From Histomonas meleagridis 2922-C6/04-290x (lineage: Eukaryota > Protista > Parabasalia), in the NCBI GenBank assembly GCA_020184695.1, contig JAANOX010000231.1:186001-250000 (forward strand): a stretch of DNA of 64,000 nt. The letters are read 5' to 3'. The notes under the pieces are model-generated. The model ran no database searches, was not told where the DNA came from, and saw only the letters and a list, made by a program, of their open reading frames with translations. Both the position numbers and the translations under genes were made by a program. Shown in pieces: positions 2,362-62,671 of this stretch; the first letter of the stretch is position 1; each line of letters starts with the position of its first letter.

Positions 2362-3432
2362 ATGAAAATATTTGATCATAATTTTCCATATTCTTTTAGT
2401 GTTTCTAATTGTTATCTTATTCGTTTAGCATTTTATTCTTTAAGAGGAGATGCAGACACTTATATAGAATACTTAAAATTAATACAAGAAAAAGAAGATG
2501 AAATTGGTATAAACATTAAACCAAAAAATTTTGAACTTTTTAGTCAACTTCTTTCATATAATCCCACAGAAGAATCATTTTATCTTCTTGAGAAAATGAT
2601 TGAACAAAATTTAATTGATACAAGTATTCCATTAAAAATAAAAACCAAATATTTTGCACATTACCAAACAATAAAAGAAAGCAAGCATTTGTATTTTTAT
2701 GATATTATCAAATTGCTTCTTCAACAAAAAGGAATTGATATTAATGCAAAAAATATTCATTTTTTTTTATTTAATATAAATTTTAATAATTTAATAATTC
2801 AAAATAATTTTTGGAAATTATTTAAATTATTTTATACAGCACTTATGAAAGCATCTGAATATGTTTATATAGAAATAGTTAGATTACTTCTTGAACAAGA
2901 AGGAATTGATATTAATGCAAAAGATATTTATTTGTTTTATTTAATATTTATTACAATTTTTTCTCAATATTTCAAAGTAATATTTGAAAATTATTTAAAT
3001 TATTTTATACAGCACTTATACTTGCATCTTCAAAAGGTAATAAAGGAATAGTTCAATTACTTCTTGAACAAGAAGGAATTGATATTAATGCAAAAGATAT
3101 TTATTTGTTTTATTTGTTTTTTATTTTCATGATTTGATATTTCAAAATAATATTTGAAAATTATTTAAATTATTCAATACAGCACTTATCTCTGAATCTG
3201 AAAGTGGTAACACAGAAATCGTTAAATTACTTCTTGAACAAGAAGGAATTGATGTTGACGCCGAAGATATTTTTTTGTTTTATTTAATATTTGTGTTGAT
3301 AGTTTGATATCATAAAATAACATTTGGAAATTATTTAAATTATTTTGGACAGCACTTATGAAAGCATCTGAATATGGTTATATAGAAATAGTTAAATTAC
3401 TTTACGAGAAAGGTTCTAAAGAAAATATTTAG
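2362..3432 (+). pseudogene. Internally deleted DUF3447-type/ankyrin repeat gene with 4 hairpin inserts (69, 71, 68, 68 nt)
   Basis: N-terminus is homologous to the 4677/11237/45782 genes but joins directly to ankyrin repeats (TALMKASEYGYIEIVKLLLEQEGIDINAKD). Inserts at 2764-2832, 2935-3005, 3108-3175, 3278-3345. No in-frame ATG for the upstream homologous segment. Confidence 0.7.
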
Positions 3433-3981
3433 ATATCGACGAACGTGATGTTTCCTCATTATGACCACACAAATGAATCAGTATACTATAATACATAAAA
3501 TTTTCTAAGAATTTTTTTTTGCATTAGATGTATCTTTTACATGAAAATTAGGAATCATCAAAATTATGTAATTAAAATTTATGAAAGCAATGAGATAAGC
3601 AGATAAATTTAAATGAAATAATTTTCTTTAAAGAAATAACTTGTATCATGGAATATTTTTATTGAGAACATATTATCCGAAAAGTTGAATTGAACATATC
3701 GGTGTTATTTTTCTTGAATTTTTTTCCCAGAGCATTTTGAAGATGTGTTCAAACACTTTCGGTTGAAGTTCTTCTTGTTTCTATCAATTAATATATTTTA
3801 CCACAAGATCTTTTGTTTCTTAGGCTTAAAAGAAAGGATTGATTGTGGCTTAATTAAACAATTGCAAATTTAAATTCGAACATCGATTTAAAGAATATGA
3901 AATATATATTGCTTGAAATCATTAGAATCTTATTTCATTTAAATGAATTTGAAAAAATTAACAATTAAAATAAAAGTCAAA

Positions 3982-4308
3982 CTATTTTGAATTCGCAGAA
4001 ATAAGGTCTCCCAGAGTAATTCTAGAATTTTCCAAAATCTGTTTTTTTTCTTCCAATTCAGAAATCAACTTTTGAATGAAAATATTCTTTTCGTTGTCAT
4101 TCATTTCTTGAACTTTGCTTAATTTGGTAAGTGTGAGTTTTCCATCTGCTGATTCTTCTGAATGATCTATTTTTTCATCTGGGATTGATGAACGAGATTT
4201 TTCTTCAATGTTTTTTATTTTATCTGAAATGCCTAATAGTGCTTCTAAGTCATTATAAATTTCTTCAATTAAACATTGTCTCTCTTCAATTGAGCGAAAT
4301 TTAAACAT
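3982..4308 (-). CDS. Small coiled-coil hypothetical protein
   Basis: ORF with E/K/L-rich heptads; likely start MFKFRSIEERQ at 4308. Confidence 0.5.
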   Translation of the reverse strand: MFKFRSIEERQCLIEEIYNDLEALLGISDKIKNIEEKSRSSIPDEKIDHSEESADGKLTLTKLSKVQEMNDNEKNIFIQKLISELEEKKQILENSRITLGDLISANSK

Positions 4309-4664
4309 TTTTATTTCATAAATTAACGTCCTCGGGGTACCCTGTTGCGATCTGTGTTTGTGCAAGCATAAAGCTATTCGATATATTGTCAATATTAAAA
4401 ACATTTATATCAATTATCATCAATATTGTAAATATAATGAAATAATATAGTTTCATAATTTATTTTATAATAATAAGATAAGATTATATTTTAATAATTA
4501 AATTAAATCAAGTAAAACAGAATAATCATTATATTTAAACAATCAAATAAGAGAAATAATCATATGTTGGCAATTTTTTTCGTTTAATAATATTTATATA
4601 ATTAAAATTGTTTTATTAGTTTGCCATTTCATGGGTTCAATAAGCTTTTCTTTTTAGCTTTTTG

Positions 4665-4672
4665 ACTTCATT
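4665..4672 (+). promoter_or_regulatory. Trichomonad Inr-like element (TCATTTT)
   Basis: TCAYW-type motif a few nt upstream of the ATG at 4677, as described for the Trichomonas initiator. Confidence 0.4.
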
Positions 4673-4676
4673 TTGG

Positions 4677-5870
4677 ATGGATGAAACTGGCCATGATTTA
4701 ATGTATTCATCTGATGGTCAATTTGACGACTTGCAAATACCACATTCACTAGAACAAATAATATATGATTTAAATGAAGAAAATCTCGAATTATCTGTTC
4801 AAAAAATGATAAATTTATTTGATATCAATTACAGTTATTCATTTAATTTTGTGATATGCTTTTTAGTTTATTCGGCATTTTCTTCTCAAAGGAATGAAAT
4901 TAATTTATATTTTAAATACTTACAAAATATTGAAGAGAAAGAAAAAGAATTAAAATGCGATGATAATATCATCGAAATGTTTGGTAATTATATATCTGAT
5001 ATTAAAGAGAATGCAGCATATTATTTGATTAACGAAATGATTGAACATAATTTAATGAATCAAAATGTAATTGAGAATAATAATTCGAAATATTTCGCAC
5101 ATTATAAAACAGAAATGCAAAACAAAAAGAGAAATAATGGTGGACCATATGAAATGGCTTTTTTAAGGAACTATGAAGAACTTTCAAAGAATGATTGGGA
5201 ACTTCATAAGAAATATATTAAAGAAGGACATAATCCAAATGAAATCGCAAAAATAATACGAAATGATGAAATAGAAAGACTTAAAGAAATAATGTCACAA
5301 ACAAATTTTGATTTTAATCAAAGAATTGAATCATCACTTTATGAAAGATGTTCATATATTAATCAAGGTAATATAAGAATGATTGATTATGCAGCATTTT
5401 TTGGATCAATTAAATGCTTTAAATACCTTATGATGAAAGGTTGTAATATAAATAAATCAACTACTTATGCAATTGCAGGTGGTAACATTGAAATTATTCA
5501 TTTATGCGAACAAAATCATTCATCATTTAATGGCGCATTTGAAGCAGCAATTAAATTTCATAAAAATGATATCTTTCGTTATATATTTGATAATTATTTA
5601 GATACATTAGAAAATAATTATCGACGTAATTCACCAAATAATATTTATAGTTTAGCAATTTTATGTGTTAAACATGGGAACTATGAAATTCTTTCATTTC
5701 TTGAGGAAGCTTAAACACAGTTGGTAATAATATTATTAATGAAGCAGCAAGAACAGGTAATATATACCTTGTTAAGCATTTTCTTCAAAATAATGAAACA
5801 CCTAAAAACATATTAATATATGCAACTGAATTTGGGAACTTCGAACTTGTTCAATACCTTTTTCAGCCTT
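4677..5870 (+). pseudogene. DUF3447/ankyrin family gene, frameshifted near 5710 and truncated before the repeat array
   Basis: Contains EGHNPNEIAKIIRNDEIE, IDYAAFFGSIKCFKYL and AIAGGNIEIIHLCEQ motifs. Continues in another frame (NNIINEAARTGNIYLVKHFL...YATEFGNFELVQYLF), then runs into an inverted unrelated fragment. Confidence 0.75.
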
Positions 5871-6419: not shown

Positions 6420-7667
6420 TTACATTTGTTCAATGAATTTCTCTTCTTTAAAATCATCTGCAAAAGGATCTTCTTCAATATTTGATATAGATATTCCTGT
6501 TGTGAATGTGTTTGCAGTTTGGTTGTCACTTTGTTGTTCTGATATTTCATTTTCATCAATTTCTTCTTTTTTATTTTTAATTCGAATCAATAACACAATA
6601 AGTAATGAAATTATAATAATCACAACAATAATAACGCAAACGATTATTACGATAATTTTTGTTTTGTTATCATTTGTCTGAATTTCATTTCTATAAGTAA
6701 ATGTAAAGAAATTCGAATAGTAATTGTAATATGTCGAATAAATAATAACTGTGTAATCATAATAAATAAATTCCGTTTCGATATAAATATATGACGAATT
6801 AATCGTAATTAACGAAATTGTTTTTGTTTGTATTTCATAATAAGTAAACGAATGCGTAATTGATAAAGTAAAAGTTAATAAATATGAAAAAGTTTTCGTT
6901 AAATCATTTTGAAGTGATTCAGTAAATGCAAATGACTTTGAAAATGTATTACTTTGGATAAATGTATGTGGTGCTGAATATGTATTTGATTTAGAAAATG
7001 TGTTTGAAACAGAATATGTATCACTTCGACTGAATGTGTGTGATGCTGAAAATGAAATCGTTGAAATTGCATTGCAATTTCCTTCTACACTTTGAACAAC
7101 TTCTAAACTCCCAAATTTTTCATTTGCATATGTTGGATATGTTATAACTGTTGCTGCAACATTATAAAATGCAGATTCTCCAATATTTGGTTCAGTTGCT
7201 CCATAATAATAAATGCATTGAAGATTGTAACAATTACCAAATGCTGAATTTCCAATTTCTTTAATTCCATATCCAAGTGTTAATATTCTTAAATTAGTAC
7301 ATGTTGAAAATGATGAACTACCAATTGCTGTGACTGAATTTGGAATTGTAATGTTTTTGATTGATGAACATAATGAAAATGCTGAATCACCAATTGTTGT
7401 GACATTTTCTCCAAAAATAATTATTTCGAAACTTAAGCATGACGAAAAAACAGAACCTCCAATATCTGATACTGATTTCCCAAAATCAACTGAAACAACT
7501 GATGACCATCCTGAAAATGAACTGCTTGGAATTGAATAAATTCCTTCACTAATAATTATAAATTTTGTATCGTTTTTATATTGATTAATTACATTAAAAT
7601 CATTTGAATTTAGTATTGTTAATGTTGAATTATCATAAAATAATTGAAAAGATTTCATGAAAAACAT
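6420..7667 (-). CDS. BspA-like (TpLRR/LRR_5) surface protein with S/T-F stalk, TM helix and DPF-containing tail
   Basis: Repeats such as VTTIGDSAFSLCSSIKNITIPNSVTAIGSSSF; SxTFS stalk; TM IIVIIVCVIIVVIIIISLLIVLLI; tail IEEDPFADDF. Likely start MFFMKSF at 7667. Confidence 0.85.
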   Translation of the reverse strand: MFFMKSFQLFYDNSTLTILNSNDFNVINQYKNDTKFIIISEGIYSIPSSSFSGWSSVVSVDFGKSVSDIGGSVFSSCLSFEIIIFGENVTTIGDSAFSLCSSIKNITIPNSVTAIGSSSFSTCTNLRILTLGYGIKEIGNSAFGNCYNLQCIYYYGATEPNIGESAFYNVAATVITYPTYANEKFGSLEVVQSVEGNCNAISTISFSASHTFSRSDTYSVSNTFSKSNTYSAPHTFIQSNTFSKSFAFTESLQNDLTKTFSYLLTFTLSITHSFTYYEIQTKTISLITINSSYIYIETEFIYYDYTVIIYSTYYNYYSNFFTFTYRNEIQTNDNKTKIIVIIVCVIIVVIIIISLLIVLLIRIKNKKEEIDENEISEQQSDNQTANTFTTGISISNIEEDPFADDFKEEKFIEQM

Positions 7668-9085: not shown

Positions 9086-10251
9086 TAGCCAATTGTCTTC
9101 ATCTTCTTTAACAATATCTTCAACTAAAGTATTTACGTCCTCCATTTGTTTTTGTACTTGATGTCGTCGAATTCTTAAATTGTAATTTTGAAGTCGATTT
9201 TTCTTTTTGATTACTACTTTTTATTAAGAATATAACAATTCCAACAATTATTAATACAAATGCAATTGATCCGCAAATAATTCCAATTAAAGCATTAGTT
9301 GTAAGTCCATTTGATTGTGAAATGTTTGTGCGAAACATTGTAATGAAGTTTGAAAAATAATTAAAATGTGTCGAATACATAATAACTGTGTAATCATAAT
9401 AAACAAATTCGGTTTCTAAATAAGAAAATGTTGAATTATATAAGGATAATGAAAATGATTTTGTTTGCGTTTCAAAATAAGAAATTGAATACGCAATTGT
9501 CAATGTATATGTTAATGTATATGAATATGAAAATGTTATATCGTTTTGAAATGATCCAGTAAATGTATTAGAAAGAGAAAATGTGTTTGAAACAGAATAT
9601 GTATCACTTCGACTGAATGCGTGTGATGCTGAAAATGAAATCGTTGAAATTGCATTGCAATTTCCTTCTACACTTTGAACAACTTCTAAACTCCCAAATT
9701 TTTCATTTGCATATGTTGGATATGTTATAACTGTTGCTGCAACATTATAAAATGCAGATTCTCCAATATTTGGTTCAGTTGCTCCATAATAATAAATGCA
9801 TTGAAGATTGTAACAATTACCAAATGCTGAATTTCCAATTTCTTTAATTCCATATCCAAGTGTTAATATTCTTAAATTAGTACATGTTGAAAATGATGAA
9901 CTACCAATTGCTGTGACTGAATTTGGAATTGTAATGTTTTTGATTGATGAACATAATGAAAATGCTGAATCACCAATTGTTGTGACATTTTCTCCAAAAA
10001 TAATTATTTCGAAACTTAAGCATGACGAAAAAACAGAACCTCCAATATCTGATACTGATTTCCCAAAATCAACTGAAACAACTGATGACCATCCTGAAAA
10101 TGAACTGCTTGGAATTGAATAAATTCCTTCACTAATAATTATAAATTTTTGTATCGTTTTTATATTGATTAATTACATTAAAATCATTTGAATTTAGTAT
10201 TGTTAATGTTGAATTATCATAAAATAATTGAAAAGATTTCATGAAAAACAT
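9086..10251 (-). pseudogene. Second BspA-like gene sharing the LRR module; frameshifted
   Basis: Extra T near 10146 breaks the frame. Different stalk/TM (ALIGIICGSIAFVLIIVGIVIFLI). The tail EDEDNWL lies in a shifted frame. Confidence 0.75.
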
Positions 10252-11236
10252 AACAAAAATTAAAACATTTTTATGTTTTTTCTTTTCGCTTGTTTTCAAT
10301 TTGTTAATTAAATATTTAACTTCATAAAGTAAAAAAAATCCCAAAATAAAAAAGTTATACATCAGAACTTGAACAGTTTCACTGAATTTGAACATTTTCT
10401 TCATGAAACAATTATTCAGTGAAATTGGTATATGAGCATTTAATGAAAAATGATTAAATACTAAAGAAAAGAATCTGAAATAATGTTTAACATATGAGAT
10501 CGGTAATCCTAATAAAGAGAAATGAAACTGATGTTTTCTTGTGCTGTTAAATGGATTCGGTTCATTATCTTTTAGCATAACAAAGTTTGTGACTTTGTTG
10601 GACACATTTTCTTTGTTATGGCATGAGAAAATAAAGTGGATATCCATTTTGGATTCTAAAGTAAGACAAGACGATTGTTTGAGAGTTTGGAAAATAGATA
10701 ATTGATCACGAAAAATCTTTGAACCTGAATTTTGTGGAGAGGCTTGTAATAAGCAAAAGAAATACATGGGGAAAGCCAAGAAGAAAAAACACATTTGTGA
10801 GAAAACTTGGGAACTTGTTAATAAATCAGCCAAAAACGATACAGAGAGCTTCAACCGCTTCGCCTTTTCGTAGTTTCGTTGGCTCAACTTTAACGAATAT
10901 GCGTTTTATTGTTTTTGCAATCGGAAGATGTTTATAAAGCTACAACACAATGATTTTATGAAAAGTGACAGAAAATCACCTTGTTTCAATCATGGAAACA
11001 GCCACAAAAATGAAAGAAAGAAGATGATATCGTTTAGCATCAAAGAACAGATTTTTGAATGATGAACGTACAAAAAGTTTGTTCCAACACAATTAACAAA
11101 GTGCATTGAATTCTGAATAAAGTGCATTGAATTCTGAAAGAGATATTTCCATACAACCGTACCAATTCCTAAGACCGTTAAAAACACAATTAATCACTCT
11201 GTCAAATTTTATATAAGGCTATTGTGCTCACTGTAA

Positions 11237-14119
11237 ATGAATGAATGTATCAGTGGGAGCAGCGAACCTTCATCTCTCAAACAAATATTGAAAATACTAA
11301 ATTCTATTCAGCAAATTATTTATCATTTAAAACAAGAAAATCTTGAATCATCAGTTCAACAAACAACTCAATTATTTGACACAACTCCATCATGTTTATT
11401 AAACTTTATCATTTGTCATATAGTTTATTCATCATTTTTTTCTCAAAGAAATAAATTTGATATCTATGAAGAATATTTAAAATTGATTCAATCAAAAGAA
11501 GCGGAAATAAATGAAAGTTCATCGAAAATCTTTAAAATTTTGCTTAATTATATTTTAACTATAAAATCACAAGAAGCAGATTATATAATCAATAATATGA
11601 TTGAACATAATTTGTTTAATCCTAAAATTGTTCAAAACATTAGAAATCCATATTTTGTACATTATATGAAAAAAGAAGATATAAAAAAATATGGTTTTCT
11701 TGAAGACATTACCAGTATCTTCGCCAATACTGAAGAGCTTTCAAAGAACAATTTTGCGATTCACAAAAAATTAATTAGAGAAGGACATAATCCGAATGAA
11801 ATTGCGAAAATAATTCGAAATGATGAAATAGAAAAACTTCAAGAAATATCGTCACAAACAAATTTTAATTTTAATCAAACAATTGATCCATCAGTTTATG
11901 AAAGATGTTCATTCATTAATCAATATAATGTCACATTAATTGATTATGCAGCATTTTTTGGATCAATCAAATGTTTTAAATTTTTGCTTATGAATGGTGC
12001 AAATGTAAATAACACAGGTAAATATGCAGTTGCAGGTGAAAACAAAGAAATTATTCATTTATGCGAACAAAATCATTCAACATTTGAAAATGCATATGAA
12101 ACTGCAATTATGTTTCATTTAAATAATATCTTTAAATATCTTTATGAAAATAAAATTGAAGAAATTAATAACTTAGAACAATTAGGAAAGGTATGTATTA
12201 TATGTGATAATTATGAAATTTTTTTTTTTTACTTCAAGAAGGTATGAAAATAAATGATGATATTATAAATGAAGCAGCAATTGATGGAAATATATTTCTC
12301 ATTAAACATTTTCATGAAAGTTGCCAACTTCCAAAAGATATTTTAGTTTACTCAGCAGAGTCAGGAAACATTGAACTTGTAAAATATATTTTAGAACAAA
12401 AAATAAATGATATTAACACTAAAAATGATATTGATTCCATTAATTTGAAATACATATTTTATATTTGGAAATTATTTAAGATATTTAGCACAGCACTTGT
12501 ACTTGCTTCTGAATTTGGTTATACAAAAATTGTGAAATTACTTCTTGAACAAAAGGGAATTGATATTAATGCTAAAGATGATATTAATTTTGATAATTTT
12601 ATATTTCAAAATAGAATTTGGAAATTATTTCAATTATTTACAGCAGCACTTAGAGGAGCATCTCTTTGTAATCATAAAAAAATAGTTAAATTACTTCTTG
12701 ATCAAAAAGGAATTGAAATTAATGATAAAGATATCTATATGTTTTATTTGATATTAAATTTAATAATTTTATATTTCAAAATAATATTTGGAAATTATTT
12801 AAATTATTTGATACAGCACTTATTTTAGCATCTCAAAATGGTCATACAGAAATAGTCAAATTACTTCTTGAACAAGAAGGAATTGATATTAATGCTAAAG
12901 ATATTTATTTGTTTTATTTAATATTTATTTTAATAATTTCATGTTTCAAAATAATATTTGGAAATTATTTAAACTATTTAGAACAGCACTTATATGGTCA
13001 TCTTTAAATGGTTATTCAGAAATCGTTAAATTACTTCTTGAACAAGAAGGAATTGAAATTAATTCTAAAGATATTTATATGTTTTATTTGATATTAAATT
13101 TAATAATTTCATGTTTCAAAATAATATTTGGAAATTATTTAATTTGTTTAAAACAGCACTTATGAAGGCATCTTTAAATGGTTATTCAGAAATAGTTAAA
13201 TTACTTCTTGATCAAAAAGGAATTGATATCAATGCTAAAGATATTCATATGTTTTATTTGATATTATTTTTAATAATTTAATATTTTAAAACAATGTTTG
13301 GAAATTATTTCAAATATTCAAAACAGCACTTATATGTACATCTGAAAAAGGTCACACTGAAATAGTTAAATTACTTCTTGAACAAGAAGGAATTGATATT
13401 AATGCTAAAGATATTTATTTGTTTTATTTATAATTTATTTTTATAATTTTATATTTCAAAATAATATTTGGAAATTATTTAAATTATTTAATACAGCACT
13501 TATATGGGCATCTAAAAATGGTAATACAGAAATAGTCAAATTACTTCTTGAACAAAAAGGAATTGATATTAATGCTAAAGATATTTATTTGTTTTATTTA
13601 ATATTTATTTTAATAATTTCATGTTTCAAAATAATATTTGGAAATTATTTAAACTATTTAGAACAGCACTTATTTTAGCATCTTGGAAAGGTCGTACAGA
13701 AATAGTTAAATTACTTCTTGAACAAGAAGGAATTGATATTAATGCTAAAGATATTTATTTGTTTTATTTAATATTTATTTTAATCAATTAATTTTTCACA
13801 ATCATACTTGGGATTTATTCAAAACTTAGAATACATCACTTATTATTTCAGTTGGGAGAAATCATATTGAAATAGTTCAGTCACTTCTTACACAAAAAAG
13901 AATTGATATTAATGCTAAAAATATTTATATGTTTTATTTGAAATTTATTTTAATAATTTGATGTTTAAAAATAATATTTGGAAATTATTTAACACATTTT
14001 GGACAGCATTGATGATAGCTATTGATGAAGGTAATGAAGATATAGTTAAACTACTTCTTAAGCAAGAAGGAATTGATGTTGTTAAAAAGAATATTATTTT
14101 GTTTTATTTAACGATTTGA
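11237..14119 (+). CDS. DUF3447 + ankyrin repeat protein interrupted by 10 hairpin inserts (2 x 51 nt, 8 x 68 nt); one -1 frameshift in a T12 run
   Basis: Removing 12436-12486, 12589-12639, 12742-12809, 12912-12979, 13082-13149, 13252-13319, 13422-13489, 13592-13659, 13762-13829 and 13932-13999 and adding one T at 12219-12230 gives one ORF of 746 codons with 34-aa ankyrin repeats. Confidence 0.8.
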
Positions 14120-14274
14120 ATTAAATGACTCTCTAACTAAGTAAATCTCACAAAATTCTTGTTTAAAATATAATAAGTAAAGAAAACATAATTTTCTTCC
14201 AATAACTTTGTAAGTAAAATGTAATAAAGTATATATTAAAATTATTTTTTATTGTTTCCTTTATTTGTTTAACA

Positions 14275-25014: not shown

Positions 25015-25610
25015 TTGAGATTTTGCGAACGACCATCAAGAAGCCGTTTATTCAAATTTTAAATCAAGGAGCAAATTTTCTAAAAAAATTCGTCTATGTT
25101 TATATGCTTTTTTATGGTTTATGTATTGGATAAATTTATTAATTTATTAGTCGGAAATATATTTCTTTTGTTTTTCTTATGTTTTAAAATTGATATTATG
25201 TAGGAAAAAAATGTTGTATTCCATACACTTTTATCCTTTTTTTGTTTGACGCGCTATAAGAAAAGCATTAAAGTTACTCATTTCTTCATTCTCTTATGAA
25301 GCAAAAGAAACTTGAAAAGTGACAAGGTATTCAAAACATTTTCAAATTTAAGGAATACTAAAAAGCAAATAACGAAATACACAAAATTATTATATAAGGA
25401 AGTATAGTTGATTCAATAAATGTAAAAATTGCGACATACTATTAATTTCCAAAAATCACATAATTATCAAAAAACCGTATTCGAAGATAAATAAAAAATT
25501 TACAGCACCAAACTCTTAACTATCTTTTGTTATTGTCTCGATACGCATGAATTCTTTTCTTCACATCATAAATACTTTTATTTTTTTTTACGTAATCGAA
25601 TTTTATATTC

Positions 25611-25945
25611 TTCAAATAATTTACTTCATCAAATTATTTACTTCTTCAAATTATTTACTTCTTCAAATTATTTACTTCTTCAAATAATTTACTTCATCAA
25701 ATTATTTACTTCTTCAAATTATTTACTTCTTCAAATTATTTACTTTTAAATTATTTACTTCTTCAAATTATTTACTTCTTCAAATTATTTACTTTCAAAT
25801 TATTTACTTCTTCAAATTATTTACTTTTAAATTATTTACTTCTTCAAATTATTTACTTTTAAATTATTTACTTCTTCAAATAATTTACTTCATCAAATTA
25901 TTTACTTCTTCACATTATTACTTCTTCAAATTATTTACTTTATAT
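25611..25945. repeat. Minisatellite, 17-bp unit AAATTATTTACTTCTTC (about 20 copies, some 15-bp variants)
   Basis: Directly visible tandem array; variants AAATAATTTACTTCATC and AAATTATTTACTTTT/C. Confidence 0.95.
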
Positions 25946-45781: not shown

Positions 45782-48419
45782 ATGGATTTTCTCTTATCTC
45801 TAAAAAATATCATATTTGAATTAAAAGAAGATAATGTTACTTTAACAGTTCAAAAAGTCTTGGAATGTTTTGACCAAAATTATTCATATTCCTTTTGTTT
45901 AATAACTTGTAAAATTTTATTTTCTTTTTATTGCTCCCATGGCTATAATATAAATTTATTATTACAATTTTTAAGTACGCTTCATAAAAAATTTTATAAG
46001 AAATTTAATATAAATGTTAACAAAATTTTTGTAACAACTTTAAATCATTTTTACATCAAAAATGGTGCTAATTTTGTTTATGAACAAATGGATGAACGAA
46101 AAATGATTTCTTATAAATTTCTTAAAAGAAAACGTTCGATATATTTTATGCATTATAATAATATATTGTTTTATCCAACATATATACCTGACGAATTTGT
46201 TAGTTCATGGGAAATAGAGAATACATTTCGTTATGAAGCTAAAATAAATTATGAAGAACTATCTAAGAATGATTTTGAACTTCATAAGAAATTAATGAAA
46301 GAAGGAGTTAATCCAAGTGAAATATCGAAAATAATTCGAAATGATGATATAGAAAAACTTCAAGAAATATCATCACAAGCAAATTTTGATTTTAATCAAA
46401 CAATTAAACCATCACTTTATGAAAGATGTTCATTTATTAATGAAAGAAATGTTAAATTAATTGATTATGCAGCATTTTTTTCTTCAGTTAAATGTTTTAA
46501 ATATTTGCTTGTAAATGGTGCAAATATCAAATATACAGGTAAATATGCAGTTGCAAGTGGAAATGAAGAAATCATTCATTTGTGTGAACAAAATCATTCA
46601 TCATTTGAAGGTGCATATAAAGCAGCAATTGAATTTCATCGAAATGATATCTTTAAATATATATATGAAAATAAATTAGAAAAAATTGAAAATTTAAAAT
46701 ATCAGCTAAAAAATTTATGGATAGAATGTGTTTTATATAACAACTATGAAATCTTCAAATTTCTCCTTGAAGAAAACGAAATGACTTTTAATGAAACTTA
46801 TAATATTATTGCAAACGAAATTGCAGCAGATGGGAATTTATATCTCATTCAATATATATTAAAAGACAACAATATTCCTATAAATATACTTCTTTTTGCT
46901 ATAGAATCAGGAAACATAGAATTGTCGAAATATATTCTGATTAATCAAAAAGGATTTTATATTAATGCGATTGATTTTTTTGGATTTTAATTGAAGTATT
47001 TAGAACTGCGCTTATGTTAGAAACTATTAAAGGTAATGTAGAAATTGTTAAATTACTTCTTAAAAATGAAGAAATTGATATAAATATGAAAGACAGAATT
47101 TATATAAATAATTTGATATTTCAAAATAATATTTGGAAATTATTTAAAATATTTTTAACAGCACTTATGAAGGCCTCTCAAAGTGGTTCCACAGAAATAG
47201 TTAGATTACTTCTTGAACATAAAGGAATTGATGTTAATGCTAAAGATATTTATTTGCTTTATTTAAAATTTATTTTAATAATTTTATTTGTTTTATTTAA
47301 TATTTTTGAACGATTTTTGATAATTATTTAGAGAATTTAATATTTATTTGAGAAATTTGAAACAGCTATTATTTTTGCAATTAGAAATGGAAACTCACAA
47401 ATATTTAAAATGCTTCTTAATCAAAAAGGAATTGACATCAAAGTCAAAGATACAAATTATTTTGGCAATTTTTTGTTTCTAAATAATATTTAATATTAAT
47501 TTAATTTATTTATGTCATTGTTTTTAAGTGCAACTAGACAAGGCCTTCCAAAAATTATTAAATTACTTCTTAAACATGAAGAAATTGATATCAATGAAAA
47601 AAATATTTTAAAAGTTTTCATGAACTTTATATCAGCAATTTTATATTTCAAGTGATTATTTGGTATTAATCCCGATTTTTTTTGACAGCTCTTATAATAG
47701 CATCTTTAAAAGGACACACAAAAGTAGTCAAAGCACTTCTTAAACTAAAAGGAATTGATGTTAATGCTAGAGATGATGTTTATTTTTGTTGATTAATAAT
47801 TATTTTAATTATTTTTTGTTTTTTAATGATTTTTGGAATATATTTATAAAGTTTCAAACTGCTCTTATGAGAGCAGCTGCAAATGGTTATATTGGAATTG
47901 TCAAAATGCTTCTTGAACAAGAAGGAATCGATTTTAATGCGAAAGATAAAATTGATTATGATAATTTGATGTTTCAATATAATTTGTGGAGTTAACATTA
48001 AATATTTAGGACAACACTTATGAAAGCATCTGTTGGAGGTTATTTAGAAATAGTTAAATTACTTCTTGAACAGAAAGGAATTGATTTTAATGCTAAAGAT
48101 GATTTTTTGATTGATATAATATTTATACAATTTATTTAACATTTCAAATAATTTTTCGGAATTTATTTATGTGTTTTAGAACAGCGCTTATGGGTGCTGC
48201 TGAAAAAGGGAATTTAGAAATCGTCAAATTACTTCTTAAACAGAAAGGAATTGATTTTGATGCGAAAGATGATTTTTTAGGTTAATTAATTTTGATTATA
48301 ATTATTTTTCATTTAAAAAAAAATTTTGGAATTTATTCACAGTGTTTTGGTCAGCACTTATTTTTGCAACTCGTTATAGTCATCCAGAAATTGTTGAACT
48401 TCGAAATGAAAAAAGGTAA
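45782..48419 (+). CDS. DUF3447 + ankyrin repeat protein with 9 hairpin inserts (17, 51, 102, 51, 68, 71, 51, 68, 68 nt)
   Basis: Removing 46985-47001, 47104-47154, 47257-47358, 47461-47511, 47614-47681, 47784-47854, 47957-48007, 48110-48177 and 48280-48347 gives an uninterrupted 697-codon ORF. Confidence 0.85.
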
Positions 48420-48872
48420 ATGTTAAAATATTTCAGAAACACTTTGAAAATTGAATATAAAATAACCTCTCTATAAAAGAAAAAGAAAATAGCCAAAGAA
48501 TGATGCAATAGTTAATTACAGTAATGTAATAAAATAATTTAGTTTACATCCAAATTGTTAATTTTACATTAACATTTTCGTATAGTGTTGATTCAAAAAT
48601 TGTAATTTTATATTAAAAACCTTGCAAAGACAAAAAGGTATTTAACAAAACATTTATTCACAATGAACAATTGCTTAAAAAAAAAAAAATCAAAATTTTT
48701 CTCCGCAGTTTACAAATTTAACCGATTAGAATATTCAATGAAATACCACCACTTTTTCTGTTGAATGAGTTCACTTTTCTCTTTATGCTTTCTGTTGTTA
48801 AAACCGTGAGCCCAATGAAGCTGTTAAGCTTATAAGGTCAATAACTTCTGTAAAATTTTTAACAATGATATC

Positions 48873-49511
48873 TTATGATGTTATATCATTGTAATTATCA
48901 TCATCATCAAAAATCGGAAATTCCATTGAAATTCTGATCAGTTGTTTACGACAAATTGGACAAGGGTTTTTTTCTTTCCATATTTCACTTGCACAACTGT
49001 AACAACAACATTGATGACCGCAAGGAATAAATATGGCCGAACAATCATTTTCACAACAAACGACACACTTTGATTCAGGGAACACACGTACGGCTGCAGA
49101 GATGTGAACATTACAAAGTGGGCAAGTTTCTGATCTGTTTTTTGGAATTTTCTCGGAACATTTTGCACAAAATATTCTATGTCCACAAGGCACGCATATG
49201 TTCGTTGCTTCTTCCTTTTTGCATTTCATACACAAGCCTTTGCTATTACATTGCTTCATTTTCCCGATTGTTTGCTGAAAATCATCTTCTTTAAAAAATA
49301 TTTTTTGCGCAAGTGGTAAATCTGGTGGTACTTCTATTTTAGGTAAAGGTTCAATAGTTTTAAATGAAATTTGATTGAATAGTATTTCTGGAATTTCTGA
49401 TCTTTTTAAATTTTCTGCATTCATAACTAAGCGATACCCTCCGGGCACTCTTTGAGAGTGCTGACTTCCTGTTGTTTGATTTTGGTTATTTGGGTTTTGT
49501 GTCCTTTTCAT
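48873..49511 (-). CDS. Double C3HC4 RING protein (E3 ligase-like)
   Basis: CMKC...PCGH...CAKC...CPLC and CVVC...PCGH...CYSC...CPICR. Confidence 0.85.
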   Translation of the reverse strand: MKRTQNPNNQNQTTGSQHSQRVPGGYRLVMNAENLKRSEIPEILFNQISFKTIEPLPKIEVPPDLPLAQKIFFKEDDFQQTIGKMKQCNSKGLCMKCKKEEATNICVPCGHRIFCAKCSEKIPKNRSETCPLCNVHISAAVRVFPESKCVVCCENDCSAIFIPCGHQCCCYSCASEIWKEKNPCPICRKQLIRISMEFPIFDDDDNYNDITS

Positions 49512-50623
49512 TTTGTATAAAAAATGCCGAACCACTTGGAAAGTGATATCAAAAAATGATTTTTTTATAAAAACTTTAAAAAAAACTTTGTAAAAAATTT
49601 AAATAGATATTAAAATTATTGGAAGCAAGTTCTTGGAGGACATAAAAGATGAGATACATCTTGTTTTTTCAGGAATAAATGCCACATTTGGAGCATCTTT
49701 TTCAGCTACCGTCAAAAGCCCTCACCAAAAAATCCTAACGTAAGCGGTTATTGATTCAAATTTTTCTTCCATTCAGAATATTCATAGAAAAATGTCAGAA
49801 TATTTATATAACGTTTTTTTATACGTAAAAACCTCCATTTTGAACTTTTTGTTTTTCTGAGATTTATTATAAAAAAATTGACTCTTCAATCATTTTGCTT
49901 CTTTGTCAGAATTGTAGTTGCTTTCAATCATTGACTCAATTTTATGACTTAACTTAAGTTCTATTACATTATACCAAATTTTTTTTTTAATATTCCAAAA
50001 TTTATTCCAATTCCTTACATCAAATTAAAAAGTCATAACTTATATAAACATTATTTATGTAAAGTTATATCATTTGACAATATTTCTTTAAGAATCTGTA
50101 GACTGAGTATATATAAACATTACAAAATTTTATATTTTAACATGTATGAATTATTTTTTTTTAAAAATTCATGCTTCTCTTTAAGTCAATTATCATCAAA
50201 TTTGGATCTCTTAAGATATATAGATTTTATAAGTAACATTTTATATTTTGAGTTATTATGGTAAAAATGCATTTTTTTTCAAAAATCAAAAGATATTTAA
50301 TTTAAAATAAGTGGAATATGTTCGCCTTGAATCGTACTGCTTTTATCTGTGATAATACCTTATTAAAAATTTATCAGAGAAAAATCAAATTCGTCAACAA
50401 AAAATTGTTTATTTTAGAGTAAAAAAATGTGTTATCAGGAATGTTACTATAAAATTGAATTCTTTGTTTAAATTTTAATTTACAAATATTTACAAATATT
50501 TATTATCATTATTTCGAGTTGTAAACAGAAAATTAAGAAAAAGATTTGAAATCAATTTTGAACATATTAATTATTTTGATTTAATTTGGAAAATTATATC
50601 ACGTAACTAAATCAAATTGGCTT

Positions 50624-51046
50624 TTACTTCAAAGATGTTGCAGATGAGCTACGAGTTGCACCAACACCAGCTTTGCTGTGTTTAACAATCTTCTTGCTCA
50701 TTGCGAAATCAGCAAGAACATGGCCAATCATTTCTGGTTTGATTTGAACTTCGACAAATTCTTTGCCGTTATAGATACCGATTATGTTATCAACAAATTC
50801 TGGAAGAACAACCATTGATCTTAAGTGTGTTTTGACAACAGGTGGCTTTTCTCCTGGGCCCTTAACAGCTTCACGAGCCTTTTTAAGTTTAGTGATAAGG
50901 TGAAGATGTTTAACTCCGAAACAACGTGAGATATAACGCCTGCGTGGTGCTGAAAGAAGTTTGACAAATTCTGGAAGTTCCATGGCCTTGAGGTCATCGA
51001 GTGTTTTACCACGGAATGTATAGTTACGTTGTGCAAATTTGGACAT
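50624..51046 (-). CDS. RPS15: 40S ribosomal protein S15 (uS19)
   Basis: YTFRGKTLDDL...VKTHLRSMVVLPE...YNGKEF...IKPEMIGHVLADF. Confidence 0.96.
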   Translation of the reverse strand: MSKFAQRNYTFRGKTLDDLKAMELPEFVKLLSAPRRRYISRCFGVKHLHLITKLKKAREAVKGPGEKPPVVKTHLRSMVVLPEFVDNIIGIYNGKEFVEVQIKPEMIGHVLADFAMSKKIVKHSKAGVGATRSSSATSLK

Positions 51047-51138
51047 TCTCCAAAAATGGTATGACCACAGACAAACCGATAAAACCGAAATTTGATAAAC
51101 GGTCTTATTAAACGGTCACCAACTAACGTTTTTTCCTG

Positions 51139-52437
51139 ATGTCTTCCATCGAAAAGAAAGCTTTTAAGTTATGCTGCCAAGGGAATGAAGAATTATTTAA
51201 TCCAATTGTACCATCACAAGTTCCAATAAATTGTCAAATACAAAATGTTTATATCTTTTTTACTGATTGAAATTAACCACATAAATCTTGAATATCCATC
51301 ATTTTTACATGCTGCAACTATGCACCAAAAAGCAAAAATGGTTCAACTTCTAATTGATCTCGGAATTAACTTAAATTTACGTGACATTAATATTTTTCAT
51401 TTCGAAATGATCCATAAAAATTTTTGGTGTTTTTTATATTTTTTTCAAACAGCTGCTTGTTTAGCATGTATAAATGGGTTTAAACAAATTCTTAAAATTC
51501 TTATTGATGCAGGAGCTGATATTTTTCTTAATGATTACAATGGAATTTAAATCATTTTTATTTTGCGCCAATTCATTTAGCAGCATTACATAATCAAAGA
51601 CCATGTTTAGAACTTCTAATACAAAACGGGGCTAATCCAACAGCACATAATATTTATTTATAATATATTTTGTTTCTTTTCTTTTTTAATGTGTTTTCTT
51701 TTAATTTTTCTTGTATCATTTTTAATATTTCGTGAACCAATTCATTGTGCAGCACGAATGGGTAATAATCAAATCATTGATTATTTAGTTTCACTTGGTG
51801 CTAATATTAATGCACAAACAATGGATGGTAGAACACCTTTGTTTGAAGCATGTTGTGCAACTGATGAAGAGTCAAAACAAGTCGGACGTATTTCTACTGT
51901 TTCGATTCTACTTAAATATGGTGCAAATCCTTTAATTAGTGATTTATCTGGAAATTTTTCAAATTATTTAGAACACCACTTCATTGGGCATGCTATTATG
52001 GACATGAAAAAGTTATACATAAATTATTACGTAAGATGAATGATAATATTTCAGATATAGTAGATATTAATTTGAATTTTTGGATGTTTATTTAATAATT
52101 TCGAAGTTTTTTTTAATGTTTATGGTGTGACTCCTTTTCATCTTGCTTGCTTTTCAGGTAATATTAATATTTGTCAATTATTACTTGAAAAAGGGGCAAA
52201 TGTAAATGCACAAGATAAATATATGATTTGTTTATGTCTTAAAGAACACCAATGCATTATGCTGCTCGTGCTATTGCAAAAGATGTTATTAAGTTGTTAC
52301 TTGATAATCATGCAAATCCAGATGTGATAGATGACGCAGGTGAAACACCTATGTCACTTAATGAAGGAATGACCGAAATACAAGAAATTATTCAAAGACA
52401 TTCTGAACAAAATCGGAAAAAACTTGACTCAAGGTGA
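51139..52437 (+). CDS. Ankyrin repeat protein with 7 hairpin inserts and two insert-free repeats
   Basis: ATG at 51139. Removing ~51247-51280, 51395-51445, 51545-51561, 51661-51730, 51953-51969, 52081-52114 and 52226-52242 gives 353 codons with SFLH, TAAC, APIH, EPIH, TPLF, TPLH, TPFH, TPMH repeats. Confidence 0.8.
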
Positions 52438-53229
52438 TAATAGAAATTTATAAAAATAAATGTGTTTTTATTTTTTTATTTATTTAAAAACATAAAAAAT
52501 ATTGTAGATTTTTATGAAATTTAAAGATATAATATTCATCTTTTAATGTTTATATGAAAGTTTTACAAAAGTACTCATTAAGCATGAAAGAAAACCAAGA
52601 TTGAACTATTTTGTTGTTATTTCTTGAAGATGCAGTATATTAATTAATTTAATCATTTCCCAATCATTAATTTGAAACATGAAATTAATAAAATTGATTC
52701 TAAATTAAACAGACAAATATCTTTAATATTAAAGAAGTAATAATAATTTAGATATTTTTATGTAACTTTTTGATGCATACATTTTCTTTATTAATAAATG
52801 AGTATCTGACAGAAAGTGATTTGATTTTTTAGTCAAAACAAAATTTTGTTGTGATGATGTTTCTTAAAATTTTTCTATTTCATCATTTCGAATTATTTTT
52901 AATATTTCATTTGGATTAACTACATCTTTAACATGTTTCTTATGAAGTTCCCAATCATTCTGATAGCTCTAAATAATTTTTATAAAAAATTTCATCAATT
53001 AAGCCTTTTAATGAAATTTTTTGTTTTCTTTTACTACTTTATAGTGAATAAATAGTTTATTAATATGTATATAACCTTTGTCAAATAATGTTCGGCAACC
53101 GGTAAAACAATTCAAAATTCACATAAAAGTGACGAAATCGTGGGAAAATAATAAAAACTTGATTCCAGTATTGATTTAGGCATACACCATTAAGTTGTTT
53201 GCATGCAATACACCTGTAATATGCTGAAT

Positions 53230-53812: not shown

Positions 53813-54887
53813 GGGTTAATTCAGATGTCCCCAGGGGACAGTCCCCGGTGACATGTCCCCGGGTGTTCAATTTTTTAACAGTCATTGTGAAAATTTATGG
53901 ATTTCAGCAGTGGATTTTTTTTCGAAGTTGGAGAAAACCGAATAAATTGAGTTTATCGGTAATACAAGAAGTTAAAAAGACGATTAAATTGCTTTTAAAA
54001 AAAACGCACTGATACCCTACCCATGAGGTTGAACAAAAGACAATTCTAATGTTTTATTTATTGAAAAATCGTCTAAAAATGTTTATTAGCACCACACAAT
54101 GGTCACTGCCTCTAATTGTGAATGCGTTTGATTCTGTGAATGTGAGCGTTGGCATCAGGAGTCATCCTTCAATTGTCGTTCCTTTGGATGCTTTCAAATC
54201 TCCAAATGTCTCGCTTTGATATGTTACCAACGTCTAATAAATGATATTGGTACTTTAGAAAAGGCACTGTTGGCGATGTTTCGTCCCAAAAATAATGCAA
54301 TACTTGGAATTGTAAGGTTTTAAATGATGAACATGAATAAAATGCACAATCCACATATATTTTCACTCTTTCTCCAAAAGAAAATGTCTCCAATGCGAAC
54401 ATGATTCAAATGCATAATTCCCAATCGATGTGACCGCACTCGGGATTGTGATATTTATCAATGAAGTACATGAAGCAAATACGTGTTTCCCAATTGCTTC
54501 AACGCTTTCTCCAACGCGATTCATTCTGAAACAAAAAAGTCATTTTTTGCCAAATGTTTTGGGAAAAAATTTGATGCAAAATTATTATACGATCAATACC
54601 TGTTGATACCATGGAAATTTTTATATATCCAAATTACATTTGAATGTAATAACATTGAATTAAAAACGACGACATTGAATTGAAACACACAATATACATT
54701 TTTGACATGAGTTTAATCGTCTTTTTAACTTTTTGTATTACCGATAAACTCAATTTATTCGGTTTTCTCCAACTTCGAAAAAAAATCCACTGCTGAAATC
54801 CATAAATTTTCACAATGACTGTTAAAAAATTGAACACCCGGGGACATGTCACCGGGGACTGTCCCCTGGGGACATCTGAATTAACCC
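53813..54887. mobile_element. Non-autonomous Mutator-like element (MULE): ~176-bp TIRs, 9-bp TSD TATAATTTA
   Basis: GGGTTAATTCAGATGTCCCC... at 53813 with its reverse complement ending at 54887; near-perfect TIR to ~53988/54712; TSD at 53804-53812 and 54888-54896. Confidence 0.92.
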
Positions 54888-60000: not shown

Positions 60001-60690
60001 ATGATTTGTGCATTAATATTCCATATCATTAAAGAAACATCTTCACTTAAAAATAAAGATATTGCTGTTATTGGTTCCAAAGCACCTCAGTTTGTAGGTA
60101 CTGCAGTAAACACAAGTCTTGAATTTGAAGAAGTTTCTCTTGATCATTTTAAAGGGAAATGGGTTGTTCTTTTTTCATATCCACTAGACTTTACTTACGT
60201 TTGCCCAACTGAGATTATAGCTTTTAGTAATGTTTATGAAGAATTCAAAAAAATAAATTGTGAAGTTATTGGTATTTCAACTGATTCTGTTTATTCTCAT
60301 CTTGAATGGATGGAAAAACCAAAAAACAAAGGAGGTCTTGGGAAAATTAATATCAAATTAATCGGAGATCTTGGAGCTAAGATTTCTAAGAAATATAATT
60401 TTTATGATGAGAATCTTGGACATAATATGAGAGGAACTGTTATCATTGATCCTGAAGGAATTATTAAGCATGTTTCAATGACTCATCCTAATGTAGGAAG
60501 AAATGTCAATGAAGTATTACGACTTGTAAAAGCTTTTCAATTCTCAGAAAAACATAAAAAGGTATGTCCAGCACAATGGGAAGAAGGAAAAGATGCAATA
60601 AACCCAAACCTAAAAGATTCGAAAGAATATTTCGAGAAGAACTATAAAACAAGTTTCAAGAGTCAAGCCAATTTTGGCAATGAAATCTAA
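60001..60690 (+). CDS. Typical 2-Cys peroxiredoxin (thioredoxin peroxidase)
   Basis: KGKWVVLFSYPLDFTYVCPTEIIAF; GRNVNEVLRLVKAFQF; VCPAQW. Confidence 0.95.
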   Translation: MICALIFHIIKETSSLKNKDIAVIGSKAPQFVGTAVNTSLEFEEVSLDHFKGKWVVLFSYPLDFTYVCPTEIIAFSNVYEEFKKINCEVIGISTDSVYSHLEWMEKPKNKGGLGKINIKLIGDLGAKISKKYNFYDENLGHNMRGTVIIDPEGIIKHVSMTHPNVGRNVNEVLRLVKAFQFSEKHKKVCPAQWEEGKDAINPNLKDSKEYFEKNYKTSFKSQANFGNEI

Positions 60691-61023
60691 ATATTATGGC
60701 ATGAAATAAAAGATTTATCTCTAACAAAATATTTAAAAATTTTAAAAAAATATAATTTTTATTCATATTATTTCTCAATTATCTATTAATATAATGTTAT
60801 GTATGACTTCTATGGAATTTTAAATTAAAACATTGAAAAAATAAAACAATTTTTGGAAAGTTAAAAATTTATTATAAATGAAAAATTAAATATAAATTTT
60901 AATTAAAATACCATGAGGAATCTCTTTCTATGAAGTTTTTTGTTTGAAAATTAATATAAATGTATTAAAAATTTTATGTGTTTTCTTATTTTATTTTTGA
61001 TAACAAATACATATTTTATCATT

Positions 61024-61775
61024 TTAAACATAGGAGATTTCTTCATCGAAATCATTTGCAAATGGATCTTCTGGAACATTTTCTATTGAATTAGTTGATT
61101 TGAAGGAGTATAACTGATTGTTATGAATGAGTTTAATAAAGAAAATGATTTTGAAGTTGATAATAAATAAGTTAAAACTATCGAATGACTGAGTGTAGCA
61201 TCAAATATAAACGATTCAGAAAAAGTATTTGAATGAGTAAATGCATTTGATGCAGAAAATGAATCAGACATTGTAAAAGTATGAGAAAATGTATCACTTG
61301 ATGAGAATGCATTGCTCTCTGTGAATATGCTACTTTTATAAAATGTTTTACTCCTTGTAAATGTATTAGAATGTCGCACTTGATGAAAATGTGTTACTTT
61401 TGGAAAATGTATTACTTTTCGTAAATGTAATAATTTTCGTATATGTAATACTTTTCGTAAATGTGTTACTCTTTGTAAATGTATTACTATTTGTACATGT
61501 ATTACTTCTTGTAAATACATTACTTTTCGTAAAAGTGTAATTTTGAGAAAAAATATTCGATGGTGTAAATGCATTTAAGAGTGTGGGAGTCTGCAATGGT
61601 TCACAACCTTCAGCAGCTTCATCTCCTTTGCCTACATCAACTCCATAAAACGAAGTTCCTGGATATTTGTCATATGTCATAACATTAGTTACATATGTTG
61701 ACATGAAGAAATCATTTACTATTTGATTGAGAATTGAGTCATTGTACTTCCCATTGTATCTATTGGTGCCATACG
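61024..61775 (-). pseudogene. 3' half of a BspA/Pmp-like surface protein gene (stalk repeats, EDPFANDF tail), 5'-truncated
   Basis: TFTKSNTF 6-aa repeats; tail PEDPFANDFDEE; frameshifts; TM helix missing; the frame breaks off near 61775. Confidence 0.75.
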
Positions 61776-61861
61776 ATACGATCGTCGCCGTAAGGATGTT
61801 CCCTCCTATCTAATTCACCCACAATTAATAAATCTCCCACAACATTAAATTTTTTATTGCA

Positions 61862-62371
61862 ATGCCTCGTAGGTTACGTAGACGTAGTTATTCACGTGGA
61901 CATCCACTGAAGACTGTAAAGTACCCCAATGAGACATATAATAGTTCCGGTCCTATTAGTTTTAATGTAGGTGAAGGTGAGCAAGCAGTTGGTGATCAAG
62001 TATCAGCTACCTTGATTAGTGCTGCATCTCAAGGTATGCGTAAAGTGAAGAATTTTACTTTGAAAATGATTACAGATATTTCAATTCCAGTCCTTTGGGC
62101 CTTGGTATATGTACCTGATGGTACTGTAATAAAAAACATTAGTTTGGGTACCCATGCTGCCCCTGTTTCATTATATGAACCCAATCAAAATGTTATCTTG
62201 TCAGGGTACGTTACCCCTAATGCTGCACAAACTCAAGTATTTCGTACTAGGTTAGCACGTAATTTGAATTCTGGTCATAGTATTGCTTTGGTTCTTCGAT
62301 TGGCAATACAAGGTACTGTTATTAATCAGAAGTTCTTAGGTGTTCAATTAAATTATGCAGTTACTTATTAA
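61862..62371 (+). mobile_element. Endogenous viral element: CRESS-DNA-virus-like capsid gene
   Basis: 169-aa intact ORF with Arg-rich N-arm (MPRRLRRRSYSR), beta-rich body (QGMRKVKNFTL, WALVYVP, SLYEPNQNVI, RLARNLNSG, LNYAV) and higher GC than its flanks. Recognised from memory, not searched. Confidence 0.65.
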
Positions 62372-62484
62372 TAATAAATTATGTCCCACTTTTATTTTTA
62401 TGTTTGATCCACATCGTATTGGACCTGTTAGTGAATCTTATTATTCACGCAATAAGGGAAGAGTCTTACAACGTAAGTTAGTAG

Positions 62485-62671
62485 GAATAGTTAGCTTACT
62501 TCTTGAACGCGAAAAAATCGATATTAATATTAGAAATATTACTTTGTTTTATTTAGAGAATTTATAAAAAATTTGATATTTCACATAAACATTTGGAATT
62601 ATATCTGAACATGTAAAACAGTGCATATGGTAGCATTAAAAAATATGTACACATATATAATTCAAATAACG
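62485..62671 (+). pseudogene. Isolated ankyrin repeat remnant carrying a 68-nt hairpin insert
   Basis: GIVSLLLEREKIDINIRNITL | KTVHMVALKN; insert 62547-62614 is homologous to the 68-nt inserts of the DUF3447 genes. Confidence 0.7.

Follow-up and report, generated by a model that had tools for sequence, protein, structure and literature searches.

T-rich modules of about 17 nucleotides interrupt ankyrin loops in the DNA of Histomonas meleagridis and are absent from its mRNA

Introns in Trichomonas vaginalis are of the GT-AG kind with a branch motif and measure at least 23 nucleotides (nt), and its type B introns form a poly-T-rich class of 23–25 nt in which a TCTAAC branch motif lies at a fixed distance from the AG (PMC12316389). 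Here we describe T-rich modules of 17 or 18 nt that interrupt ankyrin genes in a 64,000-nt stretch of the parabasalid Histomonas meleagridis 2922-C6/04-290x (contig JAANOX010000231.1, positions 186,001 to 250,000; the window hereafter, with coordinates counted from its first letter). The modules resemble the type B introns of T. vaginalis in that they come from the same phylum, are very short and poly-T-rich and fall into a narrow length class, and some of the type B introns also reside in ankyrin genes. However, type B introns number dozens per genome, whereas the modules lack an AG or a branch motif, are only 17–18 nt long, occur more than 100 times in 64 kilobases (kb) and are stacked between single codons.

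Other systems come close to the modules in one property or another. PMC12316389 cites 15–16 nt for spliceosomal introns of Stentor and 18–21 nt for those of the Bigelowiella nucleomorph. These are similar to the modules in size and in their tight length distribution, showing that a spliceosome can handle such shortness. Yet the tiny introns of Stentor and Bigelowiella have retained GT-AG ends and occur in genes of every kind, while the modules carry R-T-T-T (R, purine) at the 5' end and a T-rich 3' end and are hosted by ankyrin loops only. Large-scale splicing of introns that escape the GT/AG rule is described for tunicates such as Fritillaria (PMC13326754). Unlike the modules, the tunicate introns are of ordinary variable length, found genome-wide and not arranged serially with 3-nt exons. 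The nonconventional introns of euglenids also do without GT-AG and are cut from nuclear pre-mRNA, but they are longer and variable, with ends that pair into a stem, whereas the modules have a length fixed at 17–18 nt and no predicted structure. Short segments, some of them about 20–26 nt, are likewise removed by an endonuclease and a ligase in tRNA-type (bulge-helix-bulge) and IRE1-type (HAC1/XBP1) splicing, which need helices or hairpin loops with G/C, unlike the modules with their 88% A+T and lack of a predicted fold. Finally, ciliates discard their internal eliminated sequences at the DNA level, and translational bypass elements (T4 gene 60, the byps of yeast mitochondria) stay in the mRNA; both are short AT-rich frame interrupters without intron signals, as the modules are, but the modules are kept in DNA and lost from RNA. 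For H. meleagridis itself, the published genome is reported to contain few introns and never more than one in a gene (PMC8529796), and a full-text literature search found nothing on introns such as those described here.

Modules in DNA and their absence from mRNA

The window is AT-rich (about 28% G+C) and holds six ankyrin loci on the plus strand, at 2362–3432, 11237–14125, 33506–34681, 45782–48419 and 51245–52437, with a fragment at about 62.5 kb. Tracing all of them gives 37 interrupted repeat junctions: four at 2.7–3.4 kb, 11 at 12.4–14.1 kb, six at 33.6–34.3 kb, nine at 47.0–48.4 kb, six at 51.4–52.3 kb and one at 62.5 kb. The sequence-only reading of this DNA had placed 37 T-rich inserts in six ankyrin loci, and motif anchoring together with locus tracing confirms both the number and the positions. 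Measured by anchoring on the G-x-D-x-N and T-A/P-L motifs, the insert totals are 0, 17, 34, 51, 68 and 102 nt, plus 69, 71 and 71 nt, which agrees with nearly all of the length classes proposed earlier, except that six cases of 17 nt are found instead of five and that the RNA gives 52 rather than 53 nt at 52066. Each insert is a series of T-rich modules of 17 nt, occasionally 18 nt, that lie at codon boundaries, and a single codon of the D-x-x-G-x-T loop usually comes after each of them, resulting in a 20-nt lattice with about 115 modules in the window. In a typical repeat the D codon and the T codon are 80 nt apart, that is, four times 17 nt plus one codon; for example, D [17] AAT [17] CAT [17] GGA [17] AGA followed by ACA GCA CTT, where [17] denotes a module, encodes the loop D-N-H-G-R-T-A-L. 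Paralogous junctions differ by whole 17-nt units, the 51-nt junction at 47098 corresponding to the 68-nt type minus its first unit. Since the window contains two tandem arrays of 170-nt period and slot-specific module families, most of the 68-nt junctions are copies of one unit, so that fewer than 37 junctions count as independent. Between the ankyrin-RING gene, the gene at 51 kb and a metagenome scaffold from a related protist (L001) the module sequences are unrelated, while their size is equal. As the sequence-only reading had also held, no such insert was found in the non-ankyrin genes scanned within the window, where the other broken frames are two 1-nt shifts, in a T run at 12219–12230 and near 5708.

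For evidence on removal, assembled contigs from three RNA runs (X3, X5 and X6, from 2023) and one DNA run (X1, from 2021) were compared with 46700–52450, the module boundaries being taken from the coordinates of the contig pieces and not from contig letters. The RNA runs are authentic RNA, with zero depth in the intergenic stretch 49772–50539 and high depth on genes, and they show poly-T loose ends at the 3' end of a minus-strand gene at 50623. Contigs of X3, X5 and X6 match 51099–52444 and 47358–48689 with 0–1 other letters and with the modules gone. An X3 contig of 1122 nt spans 51099–52444 (1346 nt), exactly 1346 minus 224, and the ankyrin gene at 51245–52437 (plus strand), whose six interrupted junctions are all RNA-checked, shrinks by the same 224 nt, from 1193 nt between ATG and stop to 969 nt or 323 codons. 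By contrast, the short-read DNA contigs of X1 are colinear with 47260–50652 without gaps, and DNA contigs keep the inserts, gap-free, across six junctions.

Three of the junctions in the 51245 gene hold a single module. That at 51545–51561, directly after a GGA codon, is deleted as 17 nt in all of the RNA depth (113 of 113 in X3, 22 of 22 in X5) and in none of the DNA depth (0 of 522 in X1). The module at 52226–52242, between ATG and AGA, is likewise a clean 17-nt deletion in all RNA depth of X3 and X5, and a third 17-nt gap occurs in both runs within the piece 51729–52065, where the parse positions the module at 51953–51969, after GGA, leaving the loop L-S-G-R. The remaining three junctions are composite. 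At 51386–51445, modules at 51386–51402, 51409–51425 and 51429–51445 flank the micro-exons CGA AAT and GGT (loop R-N-G-Q); RNA pieces end at 51385 and restart at 51445, so that 59 nt of genome stand against 8 unplaced contig letters and 51 nt are removed. At 52066–52123, three modules of 17, 17 and 18 nt enclose the exons GAT and GAA (loop D-E-G-V); pieces end at 52065 and restart at 52124 (GGT), with 58 nt of genome against 6 unplaced letters and 52 nt removed. The junction at 51652–51730 comprises modules at 51652–51668, 51672–51689, 51693–51709 and 51713–51730, with the exons TTT, TGT and CTT; X3 removes 70 nt here (73 nt of genome from 51656 against 3 unplaced letters), and 17, 18, 17 and 18 nt is the sole parse with modules of 16–19 nt that fits. 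Provided that the assembly counts its T runs correctly, modules of 18 nt are thus also removed.

The second gene compared with RNA, a DUF3447-ankyrin gene at 45782–48419 (plus strand; Pfam and parse), has nine interrupted junctions at 46.98–48.35 kb with removed totals of 17, 51, 102, 51, 68, 68, 51, 68 and 68 nt in order, and three of them are RNA-checked. At 47455–47511, read as ACA [17] TTT [17] AAT [17] ATG, the X6 contig breaks off at 47454 and resumes at 47511, leaving 5 letters in between against 56 nt of genome (51 nt removed). At 47605–47681, read as [17] GAA [17] TAT [17] GGT [17] TTG, the break extends from 47604 to the resumption at 47681, and 8 letters stand against 76 nt (68 nt removed). 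At 48271–48347, read as [17] AAT [17] TTC [17] GGA [17] TGG, the first piece runs to 48275 with one mismatch and the next begins at 48348, so that 4 letters stand against 72 nt of genome from 48276 (68 nt removed). At the six multi-module junctions, all piece ends, all numbers of unplaced letters and the single mismatches are as expected from the one-codon lattice.

One RNA contig captures the process midway. An X5 contig restarts exactly at 51690, having lost the first two modules of the 51652 junction and kept modules three and four. This contig is a partly processed RNA intermediate, and removal therefore takes place on RNA, module by module: the modules are present in DNA, absent from mRNA and removed stepwise, each independently of the others. 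The earlier expectation that the inserts are removed rather than retained is thus borne out at two loci, and of the two routes then considered, splicing stands while ribosomal skipping falls, since removal occurs at the RNA level. Dead pseudogenes and an assembly artefact, either of which had been named as an outcome that would undo the proposal, do not fit inserts that are found in DNA contigs and gone from RNA contigs. A length of about 17 nt remains the defining measure, as originally suggested, but it applies to single modules with one-codon micro-exons between them and not to blocks of 17n nt, and modules of 18 nt are removed as well, as the RNA totals of 70 and 52 nt attest.

The same layout emerges without recourse to ankyrin motifs. 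A Viterbi parser was given nothing but codon usage and a T-rich state of 17 or 18 nt, and thus no ankyrin information. In each of the five large loci, most junctions parsed in this way yield D-x-x-G-x-T loops whose third loop position is G, and the parser gives a like result on scaffold L001. Five of the six junctions of L001 parse as four times 17 nt plus single codons, with the loops Y-N-G-M, K-S-G-K, K-Y-G-K, K-D-G-L and S-D-G-F, and only two modules were recovered at the sixth. When module lengths from 11 to 24 nt were offered to the parser, 17 scored best in each of five loci. However, other lengths also yield stop-free paths; open frames alone are therefore no proof of a 17-nt ruler, and it is the RNA data that carry the argument. 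The parses of the first three junctions of the ankyrin-RING gene and of the first junction of the 45782 gene are less certain. Among nine 170-nt units, variability is highest in the columns of the one-codon exons x1, x2 and x4, which have a mean identity of 0.72; the corresponding values are 0.96 for the GGA codon, 0.84–0.89 for the modules, and 0.87, 0.94 and 0.86 for exon codon positions 1, 2 and 3. The 3-nt islands thus vary as hypervariable residues of a loop do, and the 17-mers as does non-coding DNA that co-evolves.

How the modules may be recognized and removed

The modules look like introns of an undescribed kind. T makes up 59% of their bases, A 29%, G 7% and C 6%, and 22 of the 24 RNA-checked modules begin with a purine. 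GT stands at the start of nine of these 24 and of 13 of the 22 modules parsed in L001, where 17 of the 22 start with G. In the 21 RNA-checked modules of exactly 17 nt, the first base is A in 13 and G in six, T occupies bases 2–4 at frequencies of 0.81, 1.00 and 0.71 and the last three bases at 0.90, 0.81 and 0.86, and positions 5 and 14 lean towards purine. Hence the 5' end has an R-T-T-T consensus with G or A first, whereas the 3' end is merely T-rich. The flanking exon bases show no pattern, and ACTAAC and TCTAAC are absent from every module listed, in the window as well as in L001. Nor can the RNA-defined deletions at 51545 and 52226 be slid to an AG end or to GT-AG. The modules do not resemble U12-type AT-AC introns, with their ATATCCTT 5' motif, TCCTTAAC branch motif and AC 3' end, the AT-initial modules reading ATTT or ATTA and none ending in AC. 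RNA structure was rejected as a recognition signal because nine junction regions fold no better than shuffles (z from −1.85 to +1.03).

Our favoured agent, to which we give about an even chance, is the spliceosome itself, acting in a derived, length-measuring mode on minimal U-rich introns. It is favoured because of the G/A-T start, the U-richness, the GT-rich modules in L001 and the 15-nt spliceosomal introns known elsewhere. Up to four or more modules lie in series in one ankyrin loop with single-codon exons between them, and they are cut from the pre-mRNA one by one to leave a normal D-x-x-G-x-T loop, the 5' ones being already gone in the sole intermediate seen. In this scenario, the 3' cut would be set by the distance from the 5' end rather than by an AG, because the length is nearly fixed and the 3' end is only T-rich. 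The modules would descend from short GT-initial introns, and their restriction to ankyrin loops, which holds in the window, may have come about because duplication and gene conversion carried the entire repeat unit along, and not through sequence targeting, as suggested by the 84–89% identity of same-slot modules between repeats and loci.

Several observations sit uneasily with this scenario. Half of the modules in the window begin with AT or AA and not with GT. None of the 24 RNA-checked modules has an AG 3' end, and none has ACTAAC or any other branch-like motif, as the sequence-only reading had anticipated in finding neither GT-AG inserts nor the trichomonad branch motif. According to the parse of L001, two modules there have no A after position 4, one of these having no A at all, so that an adenosine lariat is impossible in these cases if they are spliced. 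Exons of three bases between introns would be very hard to reconcile with exon definition. Moreover, a T-rich look-alike 18-mer at 45914–45931, in the conserved N-terminal domain, has the features of a module and was flagged by the parser, yet it lines up with residues that the family conserves and appears to be coding; the local motif is therefore not the whole recognition signal. Lastly, the RNA and DNA evidence consists of assembler contigs rather than raw reads and covers two of the six loci, the 45782 and 51245 genes.

Part of this evidence would sit more comfortably with a machinery of a different kind, for example an endonuclease-ligase or similar activity, possibly RNA-guided, that binds U-rich RNA and measures 17 nt. 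The missing AG and branch motif, the near-fixed length and the adenine-free modules of L001 all point in this direction, as does removal that is complete in the contigs despite the lack of any recognizable 3' signal, while the apparent sparing of the coding look-alike means that site choice needs more than the local motif. However, no bulge-helix-bulge or hairpin is predicted at the junctions folded above, so that such an activity would differ from the tRNA and IRE1 types, the G/A-T start and the U-richness look like degenerate spliceosomal features, and no candidate enzyme or guide was found. An RNA excision and ligation system of the parabasalid lineage of Histomonas that works independently of the spliceosome, with a 17-nt ruler acting on U-rich segments and joining 3-base exons, is in our view a serious contender, if slightly less probable than the spliceosome.

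It is far less likely that the messages derive from insert-free DNA, be it a second, intronless copy or DNA excised in some nuclei in the manner of the eliminated sequences of ciliates. RNA contigs by themselves cannot time the loss of the modules, and contigs drop rare DNA variants, but the 51545 deletion has zero DNA depth, the DNA contigs run without gaps across six junctions and the RNA contigs match the 51245 locus with 0–1 differences. A separate intronless twin would also be needed for every gene, and the X5 contig with two modules gone and two kept corresponds to an RNA intermediate. Decayed pseudogene arrays, or inserts kept in the mRNA and passed by the ribosome through bypassing or frameshifting, are less probable still. 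Several inserts are open in two frames, and the window does contain a true pseudogene fragment (4662–5860) and a frame break (12219–12230); yet transcripts without inserts and an intact frame of 323 codons contradict this explanation at both loci compared with RNA, and the conservation by codon position (0.87, 0.94 and 0.86) and of the G codon inside the inserts speaks against it too. We consider it just as improbable that genome assembly, RNA assembly or template switching by reverse transcriptase produced the pattern. Homopolymer-prone T runs in the assembly could explain some of the 18-nt modules and the break at the run of 12 T, but the inserts reappear in short-read DNA contigs, and three RNA runs must contain the junction 31-mers among their reads. 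In contrast to template switching, the deletions occur throughout the depth and are flanked by microhomology of 0–1 nt, and the same layout recurs in an unrelated metagenome scaffold (L001) and in a Histomonas assembly.

Other loci, relatives and neighbouring features

The other interrupted loci of the window were read from sequence. The DUF3447-ankyrin gene at 11237–14125 (plus strand), whose DUF3447 domain (Pfam) is N-terminal as it is in the 45782 gene, has 11 junctions between 12430 and 14109 and consists mostly of a 170-nt unit of 30 exon codons plus four times 17 nt and one codon; the RNA runs hold about half of the words sampled from 11200–14200. Its frame is broken at 12219–12230 by a run of 12 T, where the alignment to paralogues is colinear on both sides and calls for 13 T, so that either the assembly has miscounted the homopolymer or the gene carries a genuine 1-nt frameshift. 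A GT-AG intron at 12191–12241 was rejected as its cause, the lengths being multiples of three and the paralogue alignment indicating one missing T. A short ankyrin gene at 2362–3432 (plus strand) has four junctions, at 2755–2832, 2926–3005, 3099–3175 and 3269–3345. The ankyrin-RING gene at 33506–34681 (plus strand), which ends in a RING finger according to Pfam, has six, the clear ones being 34027–34043 (17 nt), 34137–34170 (34 nt) and 34273–34309 (17 nt, GGT, 17 nt). The isolated ankyrin repeat fragment at 62491–62620 (plus strand) has a single four-module junction, read by eye as [17] AGA [17] GAT [17] GGA [17] AAA ACA. Directly upstream of it lies an open reading frame (ORF) at 61862–62371 with an arginine-rich N-terminus (MPRRLRRRSYSR...) and no Pfam match, which resembles capsids of the kind encoded by small circular DNA viruses; for H. 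meleagridis assemblies, endogenous elements of cressdnaviruses, both Cap-like and Rep-like, are reported (PMC9615429).

A seventh DUF3447-ankyrin copy (Pfam) at 4662–5860 has a 1-nt frameshift near 5708 and ends abruptly near 5860, where a minus-strand gene begins. No 17-nt modules were found in this copy, which is probably a pseudogene fragment, and a candidate module at about 5690 was rejected in favour of the 1-nt frameshift in a truncated pseudogene.

Word-indexed protein searches with the N-terminal domains recovered H. meleagridis paralogues and metagenomic relatives at 45–52% identity, and no RNA-derived product of the window loci was found by them. Giant ankyrin proteins dominated the result of a HMMER search with a 74-residue exon, and a metagenome scan with the DUF3447-ankyrin alignment returned only three distant loci; neither was used. 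Like loop inserts occur in an H. meleagridis paralogue (L002, GCA_020186115.1), and Histomonas proteins of the DUF3447-ankyrin family end before or within the interrupted repeats. At 4200–5500 of L002, a paralogous DUF3447-ankyrin gene is split by an inserted element with G-rich inverted ends, inside which the annotated protein P0016 terminates; the protein of the element looks like a mariner/Tc1-type transposase, as judged from its sequence. In a homologue from Tritrichomonas foetus (L006, GCA_001839685.2), most ankyrin loops are uninterrupted. A T-rich loop insert of 51 nt at 2713–2763 is read through by the annotated protein of 538 amino acids, and a frame-breaking insert of 25 nt follows a GGA codon at 3071–3095, with the annotated ORF stopping inside it and three further ankyrin repeats continuing in another frame to a stop near 3480. 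These inserts are GT-initial and T-rich and lie at the matching loop position, and T. foetus may thus have related short loop introns of other lengths that escaped annotation.

Further repeats occur elsewhere in the window. Just past the stop of the minus-strand ORF 25999–27306, 20 tandem copies of a 17-nt unit (TTCTTCAAATTATTTAC) extend over 25608–25940. One rotation of this unit is identical to the module at 51953–51969 in 15 of 17 positions, which we estimate to be within chance at such composition, and a link between the array and the modules was rejected. Two short arrays of a palindromic GTCCCCGGGGAC-like unit, at 53825–53863 and 54838–54875, lie about 1 kb apart in an otherwise AT-rich stretch and could be the ends of a mobile element. 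Coding repeats of 18 nt and 36 nt (GAAAATGTATTACTTTTC-like) are found in three minus-strand ORFs, at 6915–7054, 9503–9604 and 61213–61533, and belong to a repetitive protein family.

Implications for splicing and for the ankyrin repertoire

If confirmed on raw reads, the modules would be among the shortest introns known. They would also constitute the first large set in which a near-fixed length goes together with the lack of any consensus at the 3' splice site or the branch, and the first example of one-codon exons in long series. On a substrate of 17 nt, the spliceosome would have to be able to choose the 3' site from distance alone, or else mRNA is spliced by another machinery, and a spliceosome-independent system, if true, would represent a new intron class beside the group I, group II, spliceosomal and tRNA-type introns. 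With short modules, many natural variants in length and sequence, and public RNA data, the system is a tractable one. For H. meleagridis and its relatives, the consequence is that the large ankyrin repertoire of this poultry parasite is probably truncated in, or missing from, gene models.

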